A stretch of DNA of 64,000 nt. Source: Diplonema japonicum (lineage: Eukaryota; Protista; Euglenozoa: Diplonemea). The translations under genes were made by a program, and so were the position numbers. Below the pieces are notes generated by a model that worked only from the letters and a program-made list of their open reading frames with translations, did no database searches and was not told where the DNA came from. Shown one piece after another: positions 29,719-37,290 of the stretch; within the stretch, counting starts at the first letter, position 1; each line of letters starts with the position of its first letter. Location of the stretch: assembly GCA_964019335.1 (NCBI GenBank), contig OZ025659.1, forward strand, positions 434,001-498,000, read 5' to 3'.

Positions 29719-31092
29719 ATGCGCACGTGGTGGAAAAAACACTCTGGCATCACCTGCGCGGCAGTAGGTGTGGCGGTATCACTACTAAGCGATATTTCAA
29801 TCTATGCAGTTCTCCCAACTGCATTTGGAGATTTGGGCCTGGAACAATGGCAGGTGGGGCTGGTGCTCAGCGCCAACAGATGGGTCCGGCTCCTCACAAA
29901 CTACCCCGTGGGGATCGCCGCGAAAACATACCCAGAGTACATCGGCGAGATGTTCTCGATGAGCCTCCTCCTTGGATGTATATGCAGCGCTTGCTACGCC
30001 ATATCACAACGCTTCTGGGTCCTGATGATAGGGCGTTGCTTATGGGGTGCTGCATGGTCTGCCATCCGTAACTCCGCACTTCTCTGTGTTAGAAATGTAG
30101 TTAAATCCGGTGATCTTCCAGCAGGTGAAGCAACAGGGTACTACGACGGTGTGAGCAGGGTGGGCGCTGTAGTGGGGCTTTTTGCGGGCGGGCCAATCTA
30201 CGATTCGTTGTCCTTCTCGTGGTTGTTTACATTTTGGGGTGCGATCGCGTTCGTTGCGGTCCCCTTGGGGAAGATATCCCATAGCATCACCATCAAGCAG
30301 CTCTCCACCTCAACATTCGAAGACACAACCTCAGGTCCCACAACATCATGCAGAACTGCATGCAAACAACCTCCACAAAAATTCGCCTTGCTCGCCATCG
30401 CTTTCATCACCGGATGCGTCTCATGGGGTTTGGTCATAGGCACCCTTGGGATGATCTTAAAGGAGCAGTACGGTGAAGAGGTTGACATGGGTGCCTTCAG
30501 CGTGAAGATAGCAACGTTTAACAGTATTGTGTTGGGTGTGAGGTGGACTTTAGAGGTGCTTGGGACACCGCTTCTTGGAAGGCTTTGCGACAGAGTCGGG
30601 CGGAAGAAGGCTTCCCTTGTCTCGTTTGTCATCGGGACCCTTGGGACGCTGTCGTGTTTGTTGCTTCCTGCGAAGTTCATGTTTGTTGGGATCATGTTGC
30701 TCTTCATCAGCGCATCTTCGGTCTCGATAGCAGCGCTCACGGAGGCTGTTGACACAGACATGATTTCTTCTTACGTTACGCTGCAGGACTTTGGATCTGC
30801 GGTTGGGCCTGTGTTAGGGTACACCCTACCCCATACGGGCCTCTCTGCTAAAGTGGGTGTTTTTTCCACTGTAGTGCTCTTGTATTCTCTTGGTATCCTG
30901 TGTTCGTTGAAGGCTTACGAAAATAGATTTTTGGTAGTCCTGGACACGGACGTCGCTGGGCTAGAAGTTGAACTGGACACAGTCCCCGAATTGGTCCCCG
31001 AACGCAGCAATGAGGAAGCTGCCCCAGAAGAGGTAGAGGAGGGTCCGAAGGAAACAGAAGACGATACCGTAGCGCTCGTCGATAAAGTTTGA
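29719..31092 (+). CDS. MFS transporter, paralog 1
   Basis: About 12 hydrophobic segments, VGLVLSANRWVRL, and MFS motif A GRLCDRVGRK. Confidence 0.9.
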   Translation: MRTWWKKHSGITCAAVGVAVSLLSDISIYAVLPTAFGDLGLEQWQVGLVLSANRWVRLLTNYPVGIAAKTYPEYIGEMFSMSLLLGCICSACYAISQRFWVLMIGRCLWGAAWSAIRNSALLCVRNVVKSGDLPAGEATGYYDGVSRVGAVVGLFAGGPIYDSLSFSWLFTFWGAIAFVAVPLGKISHSITIKQLSTSTFEDTTSGPTTSCRTACKQPPQKFALLAIAFITGCVSWGLVIGTLGMILKEQYGEEVDMGAFSVKIATFNSIVLGVRWTLEVLGTPLLGRLCDRVGRKKASLVSFVIGTLGTLSCLLLPAKFMFVGIMLLFISASSVSIAALTEAVDTDMISSYVTLQDFGSAVGPVLGYTLPHTGLSAKVGVFSTVVLLYSLGILCSLKAYENRFLVVLDTDVAGLEVELDTVPELVPERSNEEAAPEEVEEGPKETEDDTVALVDKV

Positions 31093-31423: not shown

Positions 31424-31943
31424 CTTTTTTTATTAGGCGCTCCTCTTACAAGAAGAACAAAAAGAAAGAAAACGGAACACAAAAAAAAAAGTTGAAGCAT
31501 TTATTAAAACGACAGGGGGGACAAAAAGGGTTTTTTATCTCCAGTCGAGTACCCGAGTAGGAGGGAAGGAAAAAAAAAAAAAAACAAGAAAAAAAATCAA
31601 GAATTGTCCAATCAGCAGGCTGAGGACCGGATTGTATTTTTCGTCATCTGGTCCCTGTTCAGCACTGTGGGCTATTGAAACACAAAAATTCCTTCCCCCC
31701 CCAGGTTAGTCAATAAGCAGATACCATGCATTAATGTCTGTGAATAAAAAACTACATTCTACACGGCTTTCCCCCCTGAAATATCATTGTGTAGACCCCC
31801 CCCCCCCCCCCCCCCGCTTTGTTTCTTTTTTCTTTTTATTCTCCATTCCTTTCTTTTCCTTCTTCCTTCTTCACTTACTTAAAAAAAATATGGGGGATGG
31901 TTAATGCATCTTCAAGAATCAAAGTTTACAAAAAAAAAAAAAA

Positions 31944-32361
31944 AATAGCTATTTATTGCCAACAAATAATGAGTCATTATTTAACTCGAGTTCCCGAATT
32001 TTTTGCACTCGGGCCCGCAGGGCCCGAGTGCAAAAAAACGGTAACGAGTGTTAAATAATGGCTCATTTGGCGGCAAGTAAGTCGTTTTATTTCGCTTTTC
32101 GTCATTTGAGTCACTCACTCTTCACTGCTTTCACTGCTGTTTTTTTTCACGCAGGTCAGCTTTTTGGGGATTTTCCTAAGGTAATACAGGGTAGCTATTT
32201 CGCCGTGGCATTTAAAGGGGAAGTAAGGGGCACTTATTCCCACTTTTAAGGGCTGGAATGGCTAGTTAAATAATGGCGATTTCGCGTTAAATAATGGCCG
32301 TTTGCGCGTTAAATAATGAGGCCCCTAGTGAGTGAAGAAAATGACGAAGAGTGAAATAAAA
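31944..32361 (+). mobile_element. non-autonomous Crypton-like hairpin element A
   Basis: AATAGCTATT terminus, imperfect palindrome 31956-32076 with GGGCCC-GCA-GGGCCC apex, subterminal inverted repeats 32085-32119 / 32327-32361, and iterated TTAAATAATG. Confidence 0.8.
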
Positions 32362-32662
32362 AAATATAAAAAAAAAAAAAAAGGAAAAGAAAACGAGAAA
32401 GAGAAGAAAAAAAAAAACCTCCAGAGCCCGAAGCCTGAAATCTTTATTTTTTTCACTTTTCGCACCTTCTTCTTCTTTTTCTTTTTTTTTTTTTTTAGAT
32501 ATTTCATCCCTTCTTTCTTTTTCATCTTCATGTGTCGGTCGTTCAAGTACGAAAAAAAAAAAAAAAAAAAAAAACTGCCATCTAACTTGTTCAGTTTCAA
32601 ACGCCACTCCACCCCATTTTTAAAATTATTATATATCCTTCCGCACTCTACTCCTCCACAGG

Positions 32663-33982
32663 ATGCCTACATGGTGGAGCACACATGGGGGGATCACCCT
32701 GACTGCGGCGGCGGTAGCGATTTCATTGCTAGGTGACCTCTCGCTGTTCGCTGTTCTCCCCACGGCGTACAACACACTGGGCTTATCTTTATGGCAGGTC
32801 GGTGTTGTTCTGAGCGCAAGCAGGTGGGTGCGGCTTCTCACAAACTACCCTGTGGGGCTCATGGCCAAGGAACGCCCCGACCACATCGGCACCGTCTTCA
32901 GCACCGGTCTTTTCATCGGATGCTTCTGCAGCGCTTGCTTCGCGTTTTCCCAACAATTCTGGGTCCTCGTTGCCGGCCGCTGTTTATGGGGCTTAGCATG
33001 GTCTGCCATCCGTAACTCCGCACTGCTCTCTGTTCGAAATGTTATAAAATCCGGCGATCTTCCAGCAGGTGAAGCAACTGGGTACTACGACGGTGTGAGC
33101 AGGGTGGGCGCTGTAGTGGGGCTCATAGCTGCCGGTCCTATCTACGATTCGTTGTCCTTCTCGTGGTTGTTCGGGATATGGTGTGCGATCGCGTTCGTTG
33201 CGGTCCCCTTGGGGAAGGTTGCCCATAGTATCACCATCAAACAGCTTTCAATGTCCACCTTTGACGAACCGCAACTGTCTGGCCCGTCCGGATGCAGAAC
33301 TGCATGCAAACAACCTCCACAAAAATTCGCCTTGCTTGCAATATCCTTCATCACCGGGTCCGTCTCATGGGGTTTGGTAGTGGGTGCATTGGGGATGATC
33401 TTAAAGGAGCAGTACGGTGAAGAGGTTGACATGGGTGCCTTCAGCGTGAAGATAGCAACGTTTAACAGTATTGTGTTGGGTGTGAGGTGGACTTTAGAGG
33501 TGCTTGGGACACCGCTTCTTGGAAGGCTTTGCGACAGAGTCGGGCGGAAGAAGGCTTCCCTTGTCTCGTTTGTCATCGGGACCCTTGGGACGCTGTCGTG
33601 TTTGTTGCTTCCTGCGAAGTTCATGTTTGTTGGGATCATGTTGCTCTTCATCAGCGCATCTTCGGTCTCGATAGCAGCGCTCACGGAGGCTGTTGACACA
33701 GACATGATTTCTTCGTTTGTGAATTTGCAGGATCTTGGATCGTCTCTGGGCACAGTCACAGCTTATGCAATACCTTACACAGGTCTCTCTGCTAAAGTGG
33801 GTGTTTTCTCCACCATAGTAGTGTTGTACTTTTGTGGTGTGCTGTTGTCCTTTAAGGCCTACGAGAGCGCGGGCCGCAGTGACTTGTCACGACCGTTGAC
33901 AACCACGTCAGTCGAAAGGCTCTGGTGCTTGGATCTCAGTGACAGTGACCCCGATTTGGAAATGGATGTCGTGGAGGAGTGA
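32663..33982 (+). CDS. MFS transporter, paralog 2
   Basis: Colinear with 29719-31092 at offset 2944; 33392-33714 reads identical to 30448-30770. Confidence 0.9.
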   Translation: MPTWWSTHGGITLTAAAVAISLLGDLSLFAVLPTAYNTLGLSLWQVGVVLSASRWVRLLTNYPVGLMAKERPDHIGTVFSTGLFIGCFCSACFAFSQQFWVLVAGRCLWGLAWSAIRNSALLSVRNVIKSGDLPAGEATGYYDGVSRVGAVVGLIAAGPIYDSLSFSWLFGIWCAIAFVAVPLGKVAHSITIKQLSMSTFDEPQLSGPSGCRTACKQPPQKFALLAISFITGSVSWGLVVGALGMILKEQYGEEVDMGAFSVKIATFNSIVLGVRWTLEVLGTPLLGRLCDRVGRKKASLVSFVIGTLGTLSCLLLPAKFMFVGIMLLFISASSVSIAALTEAVDTDMISSFVNLQDLGSSLGTVTAYAIPYTGLSAKVGVFSTIVVLYFCGVLLSFKAYESAGRSDLSRPLTTTSVERLWCLDLSDSDPDLEMDVVEE

Positions 33983-34130
33983 GGGGGAAAAAAAAAGAAT
34001 AGAAAACGATTCACTCTTTCTGAAATTACTTCACGCCTGTCCCAACCTTCAGTACCGCAGCCTTCAACAACGCAATAATCAATACCAACTCTACAATGAC
34101 CACACCAAAACCACCCGAGGTGCCTGCTAA

Positions 34131-34871
34131 TATAGCTATTTACTGCCAACAAGTAATGACTTTACCGTTACCTCGAGGTTCCGCATTTTACCGTCGAGGG
34201 CCCGCAGGGCCCGAGATGGTAAATGCGGAACCGAGAGGTCGGTAAAGCATTACTTGGCGGTAGGTAAGTGGTTTTATTTCACGACACTCAGAAATTACTT
34301 CACCACGAGGGGCACAACGGGGTGACAAGGGGTACAACAAGAGAGGGGTTACAAAGGTTACAATACAAGTTGTTTTCCCTCCTTTTGTTGACTAAGAGCT
34401 GCCGCTGTCGCTGGCATTGCCACTGTAACCATCTCTAATCAAGCCTTCCCATACCTGGCGCGGCCGCTGGCTCCTTTTTTTCTGCTGCTTCGGTATTTTG
34501 AAGTCTTTTGGGGAGCTTGGGTAAGCTGACTAAGTTACCCTTACCCACAGAAGAGTTACCCCCAGAAACTGGGAACAAGGCCTAGCCAAAAGTGGGCAAA
34601 TTGGGAGGAAAAGGTAGTCCAACTTGGAACTGAGCCGAGGCAAAAGTTGGCCAATTGAGCTGAACCTGGGGGAAATAGCAAACTGAGAGGAAAAAGTAGC
34701 CCCACTGGGAACCGAACCGAGGCAAAAATTGGCCTACCGAGGCATATTATTTAACGGAAACCCCCTATTACTTCACGGAAAACAGGCCATTATTTCACCG
34801 TGAAGTAATGAGATTTAGCGTGAAGTAATGGGCCCCCCAGTGCGTGAAGTAATTTCTGAAGAGTGAAATAA
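34131..34871 (+). mobile_element. non-autonomous Crypton-like hairpin element B
   Basis: TATAGCTATTTACTGCCAACAA terminus homologous to element A, palindrome 34143-34263 with the same GGGCCC-GCA-GGGCCC apex, SIRs 34272-34303 / 34844-34871, iterated TGAAGTAAT, and AATAT at 34129-34133 and 34872-34876. Confidence 0.8.
34568..34741 (+). repeat. degenerate internal tandem repeat inside element B
   Basis: Three related units starting act(g/t)ggaac at 34568, 34622 and 34704, each followed by ccNagScaaaa.tggc. The motif gaggaaaa.gtag occurs twice. Confidence 0.6.
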
Positions 34872-34926
34872 AATATGATTCTGAAAGTAAAGATGGACCT
34901 AAGTCCCGCCTTCACCTAGCAGGGAC

Positions 34927-35100
34927 CTGTATTGTAATTCCATGAAATCCCAGTTTCCCCTCGTGCTGAAGTAATTTCTGAGTGTCGTGATATAAAACCA
35001 CTTACATGCCTCCAAGTAATGCTGTAACGCAGGGCTCTCGGTAAAATCGAGAACCTCTAGTGGCGTTGAAGTCATGACCTGTTGGCATTAAATAGCTATT
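34927..35100 (-). mobile_element. degenerate inverted copy (element C) of the hairpin end of element B
   Basis: The reverse complement reads aatagctatttaatgccaacagg...gcattacttggaggcatgtaagtggttttatatcacgacactcagaaattacttcagcacgagggg, matching 34131-34312 with the hairpin partly deleted. Confidence 0.8.
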
Positions 35101-35176
35101 AAATGTCTGTGTCCAATATTTTGTGTGAATGCACGATTCTTCAAGAAGTTTTTATTTTTTATTATTATTTTTTTTT

Positions 35177-36248
35177 TTTTATTTCACAGTTTATTTCCCT
35201 CGGCCTAAATTCTCAAAGAGCGGGGAACGTAAAGTAGTTTCCCCCGGGCAAATAAACTTTTAAGCCAAATTTAACAGGGCGGGGAAATAAACCCGTCCTG
35301 GGACCGTAACGAAGAGCGTCACGTGGCTGCCACTTTATCAAGTGACGAGGTTCAAGATTATATTGAACAAAAAAAAGGGACCGCTAACGCCGCTATCGTT
35401 GCTTGCATGTTTAGCGGGGGCATGAGAGCTTGCGAAGTGGTGTCGATGGAAATCAGCGACATTGTTAAGACTCAAGTTGATGGGAGTTTTATCTGCACCA
35501 TAGCACGTTCAAAGACGGGTGGGCACACAAAATTCCACATGTCTGGCATTTATGCATCAGCAATGGACTAGTACTTGTTGCTACGACCTAAGAAAGAGAC
35601 CAAGCGTCTGTTCCTTTCGGAGAGAGGAACGCCCAATGGCAAAAACAAGGTATACAAACTGGGGTACGATGTGGCATCCATCATCGGAAAGCCCGCCAAT
35701 GAGATATCCAAGTTTACGTCACACATTTTTCGACGTTCTGCGGCCACAGCTGCTGCTGAAAACGGCGCATCTATCTCCATGATGCAATCACATTTTGGAT
35801 GGAGAAACCCAAGCATGCCAGCAATGTACGTGGAACAGAGCACAAGCAGTGCGCAACACATGGCAGGACTTTTGAGTCAAATACAGACCAGCCCAGGACC
35901 AGGAAGCCCAAGCCAGTCACAGGACGTCAACATCAATATCAACATCCGCACACGCCAGGAGTAGATAGTACCCACACCCCTTTTTTCTTTTCTTTTGCCA
36001 TTTTTATTTTTTCATTCTACAAACAAGCGTGATAGTCCAGCGTATTCCGGAGTCCACGTCCCGCTCTTTGAGAATTTAGGCCTCGGGAAAATAAACTGTA
36101 AATAAAACGCCGTATTCCGGGGTAAAGTAGGGTTTACCTTTTCCCTCGACAGATTGTCCTGGCCCCTCGGAACCAATTTTTCCTCGGGAACCACAATCTG
36201 TCTCGGGGAAATAAACCCTACTTTATTGCCCCGGAATAAATAGTTATT
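35177..36248. mobile_element. Crypton-like tyrosine-recombinase element D (internal-deletion derivative)
   Basis: SIRs 35177-35224 / 36060-36107 share a 23-bp perfect core, cccgctctttgagaatttaggcc. The terminal palindrome is 36113-36238 and the terminus AATAGTTATT is at 36239-36248. The element encloses a YR ORF. Its architecture is the same as A/B but inverted. Confidence 0.85.
35323..35964 (+). pseudogene. tyrosine recombinase catalytic domain (CryptonI-like), in-frame TAG at 35569-35571, N-terminal core-binding domain missing
   Basis: ORFs 35323-35571 and 35575-35964 are in one frame. Motifs are GGMRACEV (R), RSKTG (K), SHIFRRSAAT (HxxR), HFGWRN (W) and AMYVE (Y). Confidence 0.9.
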
Positions 36249-36494
36249 TTTTTTTTTTCTTTTCCCGATACGATAAGATGGCATCTTTTTTTTCCAGCTT
36301 TCTTTTTTCCTGCCGTTTTATATATTCAAACCCGGCGAAAAAAGAAGAAGAAAAAAAAAACTAATTCGATGATGCCTTCTCTTTAACGCATGCTTTCAAG
36401 GCAAAGGCTCACCCCCCTCCCCACTTGCTAACATTCTTGATAACTTTAATGAGGCCTCCCTGGCCTTCCTCTCTCTTCCTCTCTCTTGTTCTTA

Positions 36495-36580
36495 CTGTAA
36501 ACAAAAAATACCGGACGGACAAACTCCCGGACGCGACGGAAACCCGGACGTTTGTCCGTCCGGCATTTTTTGTTTTACAG
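36495..36580. repeat. 86-bp foldback / mini inverted-repeat element
   Basis: ctgtaaacaaaaaataccggacggacaaac ... gtttgtccgtccggcattttttgttttacag, with about 30-bp arms and internal ccggacg repeats. Confidence 0.85.
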
Positions 36581-36635
36581 CATAATATTTTTTTTTTCTT
36601 TGTTTCCCCCCTAAGTACACCATTTTTTTTTTTAA

Positions 36636-37290
36636 CCCATAAAGGACCGCTATTTTTCGTCTAAAAAGTCGATTTTGAACTTTTCGTTCAAATACCAAAA
36701 ATAAAATGGCGAGGGTGGAGTTAGAGGGTGTACCTATATTATTTTTACTACCCCATTTCTGGAGCGCGAAGCGGCCTGCATTTCAGCCCCAGACGCGCCC
36801 AAATTTTGGTGGTAGAGCAGCATTTGAGAGAAACAACTCTTGCAAAGGGCACATGCTATCCGCCACACACTTGCTGACGCTGAATGGGTATTCTGGGAGC
36901 AATTTCCGGGTTTTCCTGATGGTCCCCATGCAGTGGAAATCCGCATTGTAACCTGGTACCTTGCGAAATATTTTCCTCCCCACCTTCTCGATTTTGTCAT
37001 CCCATTCCATATCCGGGATATCCCCATCATCCGGTGACACTGACCCTTCTTCAGAAGTGCTTTCGGCACTACTCCTTATGGGGTGTAAAAAAAACAATGT
37101 CTGTGCCACTATTTTTTTTCTCCCCTTGCAGTTTGGATGCAAAAATTTACGAGCGATACAGCGTTCAGTATAAAAAAAGTCGCGCAATAAGGCCCCTCTT
37201 TAAAGAGTGGGCATGCAGAGCACTAAAAATGCCTTAGCAGAATTTAAAAAAAAATTTTTAGCTGAATATTCAGCTCCGGTCCTTTATGGG
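36636..37290 (-). mobile_element. non-autonomous piggyBac-type element (655 bp)
   Basis: Perfect 14-bp TIRs CCCATAAAGGACCG (36636-36649) / CGGTCCTTTATGGG (37277-37290), flanked by TTAA at 36632-36635 and 37291-37294. Minus-strand acidic and Cys-rich remnants lie inside. Confidence 0.85.

Follow-up and report, generated by a model that had tools for sequence, protein, structure and literature searches.

Closest described systems

To our knowledge, tyrosine recombinases (YRs) that recombine folded single-stranded DNA (ssDNA) are known only from bacteria, in integron cassettes, CTX-type phages and a few integrative elements, and we know of no solution to the question of how the eukaryotic Cryptons move. 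Here we describe a repeat family found in four copies (A, B, C, and D) in a window of Diplonema japonicum DNA (the whole stretch analysed, 64,000 nucleotides; contig OZ025659.1, 434,001–498,000, or G000:C12:434001-498000, from a 62.5-Mb, 132-contig assembly). Its assignment to the Crypton-type YR transposons is supported by gene content (see below). The elements carry a large hairpin at one end, next to the left terminus, and there is good support for this hairpin being a strand-polar fold under selection. A site meant to work as a folded single strand would be designed with just this anatomy, whose logic matches that of integron attC and CTX attP.

Cryptons occur in fungi, stramenopiles, animals, and green algae. 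The present elements share with them a single YR open reading frame (ORF) with the full catalytic set and no reverse transcriptase (RT), a majority of non-autonomous copies, and a short identity between end and target in place of a classical target duplication. Cryptons have been described as lacking terminal inverted repeats, with direct repeats of 4–6 bp only (PMC3212892; PMC13465315). This absence does not extend to our elements, which unlike Cryptons have a terminal hairpin of 70–200 nt, subterminal inverted repeats of 35–48 nt and a stretch complementary to both termini (the splint, see below); a very short A-rich stretch shared by both junctions is possible. The words "hairpin" and "palindrome" are absent from the text of PMC3212892, PMC13465315, and PMC6681497 (the last covering VIPER and TATE, YR elements of kinetoplastids), and full-text literature searches brought up no account of a eukaryotic YR transposon whose site is a folded single strand.

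As in these ends, in integron attC sites conserved short sequences surround an imperfect palindrome that is free in sequence and length, non-Watson-Crick features encode the strand, the crossover lies at the stem base and no overlap is duplicated (PMC3458562 for the attC mechanism). The marks of polarity are different, tandem G·A pairs and GNA loops here instead of the extrahelical bases of attC. Unlike IntI, the enzyme is nearest to Cre in fold, and its host is a eukaryote. Two inverted stretches at one integrated end also fold into a one-strand hairpin site in the CTX attP(+) recombined by XerC/D, although CTX depends on recombinases of the host and on the ssDNA genome of a phage while the elements described here encode their own YR.

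Strand polarity of the terminal hairpin

The sequence-only reading had proposed that the mismatches within the palindromes are non-random, with CGAG opposite CGAG on one strand. This stood when opposed non-Watson-Crick positions of the top strand (the one reading ATAGCTATTT at the left end) were counted in the parsed folds of 12 subfamily representatives, with 52 A·G against only 2 C·T, and 5 T·T. A strand bias had also been claimed for G-T mismatches, and this part has to be abandoned (10 G·T, 9 A·C). The asymmetry is confined to G·A pairs, nearly all of them in CGAG opposite CGAG. This motif reaches 22.8 per kb in the palindromes compared to 2.6 per kb in the flanks (a ninefold difference), and its starts cluster at 42–43, 62–64, and 81–83 nt from the terminus in families whose stems are unrelated, a spacing of ~21 nt or about two helical turns. 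Almost every collected copy has CGAG/CGAG, while CTCG/CTCG was seen in 2. The bases around CGAG are unconstrained, which points to a structural pair rather than to a recognition motif of duplex DNA.

Tandem G·A pairs in a Py-GA-Pu context take a stable sheared form. The loop tips behave in a similarly regular way: they read C-GCA-G in A and B, as had been noted, or GC-GNA-GC with N being A, C, T, or G, often as GCGAAGC. This last is an exceptionally stable DNA mini-hairpin, and GNA triloops are hallmarks of DNA hairpins. In every subfamily examined, a single strand carries the non-Watson-Crick features, whether strands are defined by the element or by the YR gene. Families A, D, and E (all three examined) have this gene antisense to the top strand, as had been remarked for D.

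The copies and features in the window are as follows.

31944–32362, + strand: element A, non-autonomous, ~420 bp
31945: terminus of A, ATAGCTATTTATT
31957–32076: palindrome of A, GCA loop at 32017–32019
32072–32119: splint and left subterminal repeat (SIR-L) of A
32268, 32289, and 32311: three direct repeats AAATAATG of A
32327–32361: right subterminal repeat (SIR-R) of A, ending GTGAAATAA
34131–34875, + strand: element B, non-autonomous, ~745 bp
34132: terminus of B
34144–34263: palindrome of B, two CGAG/CGAG sites, GCA loop at 34204–34206
34272–34303: SIR-L of B
34803 and 34823: repeats AAGTAATG of B
34844–34873: SIR-R of B
34957–35102, − strand: fragment C, an inverted B-like left end with the terminus at 35089–35102 and the palindrome centre deleted
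35177–36250, − strand: element D, internally deleted, 1,072 bp compared to 1.36–1.40 kb in sister copies
36237–36249, − strand: terminus of D
36108–36236, − strand: palindrome of D
36060–36107 and 35177–35224: subterminal inverted repeats of D
35296–35964, + strand: pseudogene of the YR in D, limited to the catalytic domain and broken by stops, antisense to D's CGAG strand

A, B, and D share a layout already recognized in the first reading. A terminus is followed by a palindrome of ~120 nt, by GTTTTATTT with a subterminal inverted repeat and by the body, and a partner repeat closes the element with GTGAAATAA. The positions first given for the paired motifs are correct. Read off the + strand, CGAG faces CGAG at 31987/32045 in A and at 34174/34232 and 34195/34212 in B, and in D, where the motif is on the − strand, CTCG appears on the + strand at 36145/36202, at 36166/36183 and between the subterminal repeats at 35199/36082. 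The inner site of A is a corrected (perfectly paired) CTCG..CGAG variant, most family copies having GA at 32009–32010. The window palindromes fold with z-scores of −7.5 to −11.8; fragment C folds weakly (z ~ −1.9) and forms with the left end of B an inverted repeat of 73 nt.

A diverse family with conserved pairing

The layout recurs genome-wide, the terminus pattern AATARCTATTTAYT having 743 matches compared to a single one for the reversed control. For comparative work we used 90 loci plus the window, which gave 80 distinct termini and 44 complete elements (0.23–2.45 kb) in at least eight subfamilies, labelled A, B, D, E (with E2–E4), F, G, and H. All of them have the 13-nt terminus, the hairpin, a GTTTTAT-type motif, subterminal inverted repeats and a GTGAAATAA-type right end, and the hairpin sequences are otherwise unrelated between subfamilies. 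E-type hairpins (L048, L034, L054, L003:2853, and others) are T- or Y-shaped, with two mini-hairpins, each CAC-GA-GC-GNA-GC-GA-GTG, within a long stem. This is a large family of small DNA transposons, probably still active, the bulk of it non-autonomous. Scans of metagenomes by protein profile and by the combined pattern of terminus, CGAG, and GTTTTAT gave no match. Three identical E-type copies with a degraded YR lie 16–35 kb apart on one contig (G000:C69:32150, 67556, and 83155), which suggests a large segmental repeat there.

Representatives of A, B, H, and D were aligned, with the structure taken from the individual folds. Changes on both sides were found in 27 of 52 pairs, and the covariation score was 0.327, compared to 0.154 for shuffled alignments (0 of 500 shuffles reached it) and at most 0.156 when slid, a score of a kind that kinship can inflate. 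The size of the effect, together with the complete turnover of stem sequence, indicates that pairing and not sequence has been kept, and conservation of the hairpin fold by compensatory change is thus supported by the alignments.

The pairing extends beyond the hairpin. RNAalifold pairs the conserved terminus ATAGCTATTTAYT with RGTAAGTNGTT directly after the hairpin, with a T-A to C-G compensation in family B, and the right terminus GTGAAATAA finds its partner in the nine bases that follow, TTATTTCAC. Since the two segments are adjacent, one internal stretch pairs contiguously with both termini. Such a splint would bring the termini side by side when the strand folds or the ends join, turning the end region into one hairpin of 230–300 nt, and simulated joined ends gave a single hairpin of this length in all eight families folded. 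The genome contains 29 head-to-tail junctions, all with exact GTGAAATAA/TAGCTATTT-type spacing and some between families (including A to B). The crossover point is located at the base of the fold, adjoining the conserved core, as it is in attC and CTX attP. Each family also has its own 8-mer in both hairpin arms, with three direct copies ~21 nt apart before the right repeat, and these 8-mers are likely, from their arrangement, to be binding sites of the recombinase.

Flipped, corrected, and truncated hairpins

The polarity is the same in every subfamily examined without being absolute. The tallies given here for A and B cover 100 of 234 matches, those listed, and were counted by eye, as were the 100 E-type copies among the matches listed. 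B gave 35 GA/GA and 1 flipped site, while A gave 42 GA/GA, 21 corrected to perfect pairs and 1 TC/TC. Either E-type mini-hairpin can be exactly flipped; the first had the GNA orientation in 87 of the 100 copies, and the other 13, from at least three subfamily backgrounds, had it as an exact flip. One B copy (L085) has its whole inner 85 nt flipped, and the hairpin centre between the CGAG repeats has been lost in many copies. Parvovirus terminal repeats resemble the E-type ends in their T/Y shape and in their flip and flop forms. The differences are that no Rep/HUH gene is present here, that the hairpin is at one end only and that flips are a minority and not 1:1.

Flips, corrections, and losses of the centre are known mutational habits of quasi-palindromes, and their abundance, like that of deleted palindrome centres, could be taken to mean that the polarity is an inherited accident, the palindromes being maintained by arm-to-arm correction in replication with CGAG/CGAG as a neutral ancestral relic. 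The same correction processes should, however, erase or flip the mismatches, which instead persist at equal distances from the terminus in families whose YRs are only 32–40% identical and whose stems share no sequence. We consider this the least probable of the explanations discussed here. As flips recur on at least three backgrounds, a neutral polarity would have been randomized; flipped variants arise easily and yet remain a minority, and the stem sites keep the G·A strand in all lineages, which argues for selection. The polarity thus looks selected and not frozen.

Folding of the two strands as DNA and as RNA

With nearest-neighbour DNA parameters the top strand is the more stable one in nine of ten families (by 0.9–7.6 kcal/mol), and with RNA parameters in ten of ten (by 2.6–18.6 kcal/mol). 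The RNA values are consistent with a structured top-strand transcript, antisense to the YR mRNA, which might act as a regulator, small-RNA precursor, or guide. Tandem G·A pairs in the CGAG context are stable in RNA too, read-through transcription is likely given that the genes of the window lie on one strand (see below), and ~60% of the copies are in sense with the neighboring ORFs. A strict orientation bias to host genes was nevertheless rejected (24 vs. 14), and the even numbers of G·T and A·C leave no G·U-type excess of the sort typical of conserved RNA structures. The loops are of the DNA type, GNA and GCGAAGC especially, and no Rfam family matched (neither Rfam nor tRNA searches gave a match). 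It is improbable, then, that RNA is the molecule that folds.

Insertion sites and an empty allele of B

The top-strand flanks are A-rich, with ~90% A at positions −5 to −1 and ~80% A at +1 to +10. The elements are inserted into A runs in a fixed orientation. The complete elements show no target duplication in general, and TAGCTA never appears at the right junction of the collected elements. A two-strand exchange would carry an overlap of 6–8 bp to the right junction, and TAGCTA is not carried.

An allele without B is found in contigs of three independent studies, where its depth is no lower than that of the occupied junctions, and is absent from the assembly. It joins 34134 to 34871 with AT between them, ATAATA replacing the element, and is either a presence/absence polymorphism or an excision product. 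Conservative exchange with an overlap of ATA, ATAATA, TAATA, or AA was considered for this allele and rejected, none being exact (a discrepancy of 2–6 nt).

These junctions also bear on the classical view, in which a double-stranded circle is excised and the YR acts on a duplex core as in the Goodwin Crypton model, the palindrome being a protein-binding array or a Holliday-junction-like cruciform and CGAG a directional duplex signal. The junction core is itself a near-palindrome as duplex (AAATAAT-AGCT-ATTTATT), the 8-mers in both arms and their three direct copies near the right end resemble arm-type sites, both strands fold nearly equally in the DNA model, and the short-direct-repeat model (PMC3212892) would account for the short A-rich identity seen at both junctions. 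On the other hand, only the 4 nt of CGAG are kept, with any base beside them, and they are always mutually opposed in a stem that otherwise covaries, which marks a structural pair instead of a motif read in duplex DNA. The loop tips obey the GNA rule with N free, and the central TAGCTA does not reach the right junction as an overlap of 6–8 bp would. Taken together, we find recombination of a conventional duplex site unlikely, though more probable than the other rivals.

The recombinase

Autonomous copies of family A measure 1.56–1.69 kb, with one frame of 377–440 amino acids (aa) between both ends. An intact YR was to be sought according to the sequence-only reading, and a genome profile search located only four such copies (~377 aa; one of them at G000:C36:2369-3460), the remaining matches being fragments or pseudogenes. 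The catalytic residues are invariant (R142, K169, H249 and R252 of the H-x-x-R motif, W275, and Y284) and PF00589 matches. The AlphaFold model has a predicted local distance difference test (pLDDT) score of 87, and Foldseek matches it to Cre (E 9e-12, template modelling scores 0.64/0.74), followed by XerH, XerA, IntI, and Tn1549 Int, with IntI at rank 40. The protein is a member of the tyrosine recombinase superfamily with the full catalytic set and, as modelled, a Cre-like fold. The YRs of families A, D, and E are mutually 32–40% identical. In D, where PF00589 was found by Pfam on both pieces of the pseudogene, two TAG stops lie within the profile match; relatives elsewhere in the genome have 86–94% identity to it.

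A word-based protein search with the intact YR gave no match, and a sequence search of the PDB only a weak match to XerA. An exhaustive protein search found 1,413 relatives, the best at 33–40% identity on contigs of 1.3–2 kb, the nearest proteins being unnamed. An association of YR copies with RT was rejected, since no YR match of the genome-wide profile search is fused to or adjoins an RT match, and it is on this gene content (YR, no RT) that the assignment to the Crypton type rests. At least 150 RT matches, in frames of 1,400–2,100 aa, are concentrated in a few contigs (C51, C52, C61, C13, C18, and others); these clusters have the look of retroelement islands with no relation to the YR family.

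DIRS1 carries inverted repeats together with an internal region whose sequence complements the start of its left end and the finish of its right end (PMC6681497), an arrangement believed to bring the ends of a single-stranded intermediate into alignment. The splint mirrors this internal complementary region (layout in PMC6681497), whereas our elements have neither RT nor RNase H, measure 0.4–1.7 kb and have the complementary region abutting a large hairpin. A DIRS-like retro-mobilization in trans could thus be envisaged, with single-stranded cDNA made by a foreign RT, circularized on the splint and integrated by the YR. RT is indeed encoded by at least 150 elements of the genome, long A runs are common as right flanks, and there are long target duplications at two copies. 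We nevertheless judge it very improbable: RT is neither in nor beside any YR copy, the RNA needed would run antisense to the YR gene, A-richness is found in the left flanks too, and the junctions are exact and not tailed.

A folded single strand as the proposed recombination site

The sequence-only reading had seen in these ends Crypton-like elements moving through a strand-specific folded ssDNA. Its Crypton-type assignment and the conserved polar fold were borne out and its argument from G-T pairs was not, while folding with DNA parameters agreed in direction in nine of ten families, by a small margin. We put at about even the chance that the recombination site is a single strand in folded form, namely the element's top strand, to which the YR gene is antisense. 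On this model, the YR would bind the family-specific 8-mers in the stems, cleave the top strand where the two termini are juxtaposed, and join these. A single-stranded circle would then be peeled out, as in integron cassette excision or IS200/IS605, with a junction of joined ends reading GTGAAATAATAGCTATTT. The hairpin of the circle would present the core as a pseudo-duplex for a one-strand exchange with an A-rich target, and replication would finish the event. IS200/IS605 and the bacterial strand-biased circularizing elements match this logic, with a strand that folds, ends that meet, a single-stranded circle and fixed polarity without duplication (PMC9345347 for the strand-biased YR elements), although IS200/IS605 use an HUH enzyme and both groups are bacterial. 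More tentatively, and with the balance tipping slightly toward the negative, these would be the first eukaryotic transposons in which a YR acts on folded ssDNA, with termini aligned by a splint and the G·A-studded hairpin of a single-stranded circle as integration site.

Several observations weigh against a folded single-strand site. The advantage of the top strand is small in the DNA model and reversed in family G, G·T is not enriched over A·C, and the near-palindromic core makes a classical duplex site possible. The D-long tip is flipped in seven of eight copies and the inner G·A is corrected to Watson-Crick in about a third of the listed A copies, meaning that the innermost features are dispensable or that those copies are dead; these features seem less constrained. 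Target duplications of 17 and 24 bp with a few filler bases exist at two copies (L025:1087-2751 and L064, minus strand); they are not predicted by the folded-strand model and may reflect aberrant or repair-mediated insertion. The B-less allele is 2 nt off a clean excision product, and the comparisons are confined to one genome.

Chlamydomonas Cryptons are active, with clean excision and yet a gain in copy number (bioRxiv 10.1101/2022.05.23.493040), and a one-strand mechanism would explain this combination. If true, the folded-strand model would extend a bacterial folded-ssDNA mechanism to eukaryotes and link Cryptons and DIRS elements mechanistically, and a compact recombinase that inserts ssDNA could follow. 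The family offers a testable design (a conserved core, a hairpin fixed by structure with phased one-strand G·A pairs, a splint that aligns the ends and a small intact recombinase), and its hundreds of natural variants, flipped, corrected, or deleted, are a ready mutational series.

Other features of the window

The four copies are located between and after two tandem genes, of which the second is flanked upstream by element A and downstream by element B.

29719–31092 and 32663–33982: two tandem MFS-transporter paralogues

Nearly all long ORFs of the window are on the + strand, which suggests polycistronic gene arrays, and the genes lack evident introns. A separate palindrome with perfect arms (TGTAAACAAAAAATACCGGACGGACAAAC and GTTTGTCCGTCCGGCATTTTTTGTTTTACA) lies at 36497–36580 and is probably another repeat family; the stretch 36536–36900, which includes it, has very high contig depth in sequencing runs. 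Long homopolymer runs (C20 at 31797–31816, and A or T runs of 20–30) are frequent in intergenic DNA throughout the genome.

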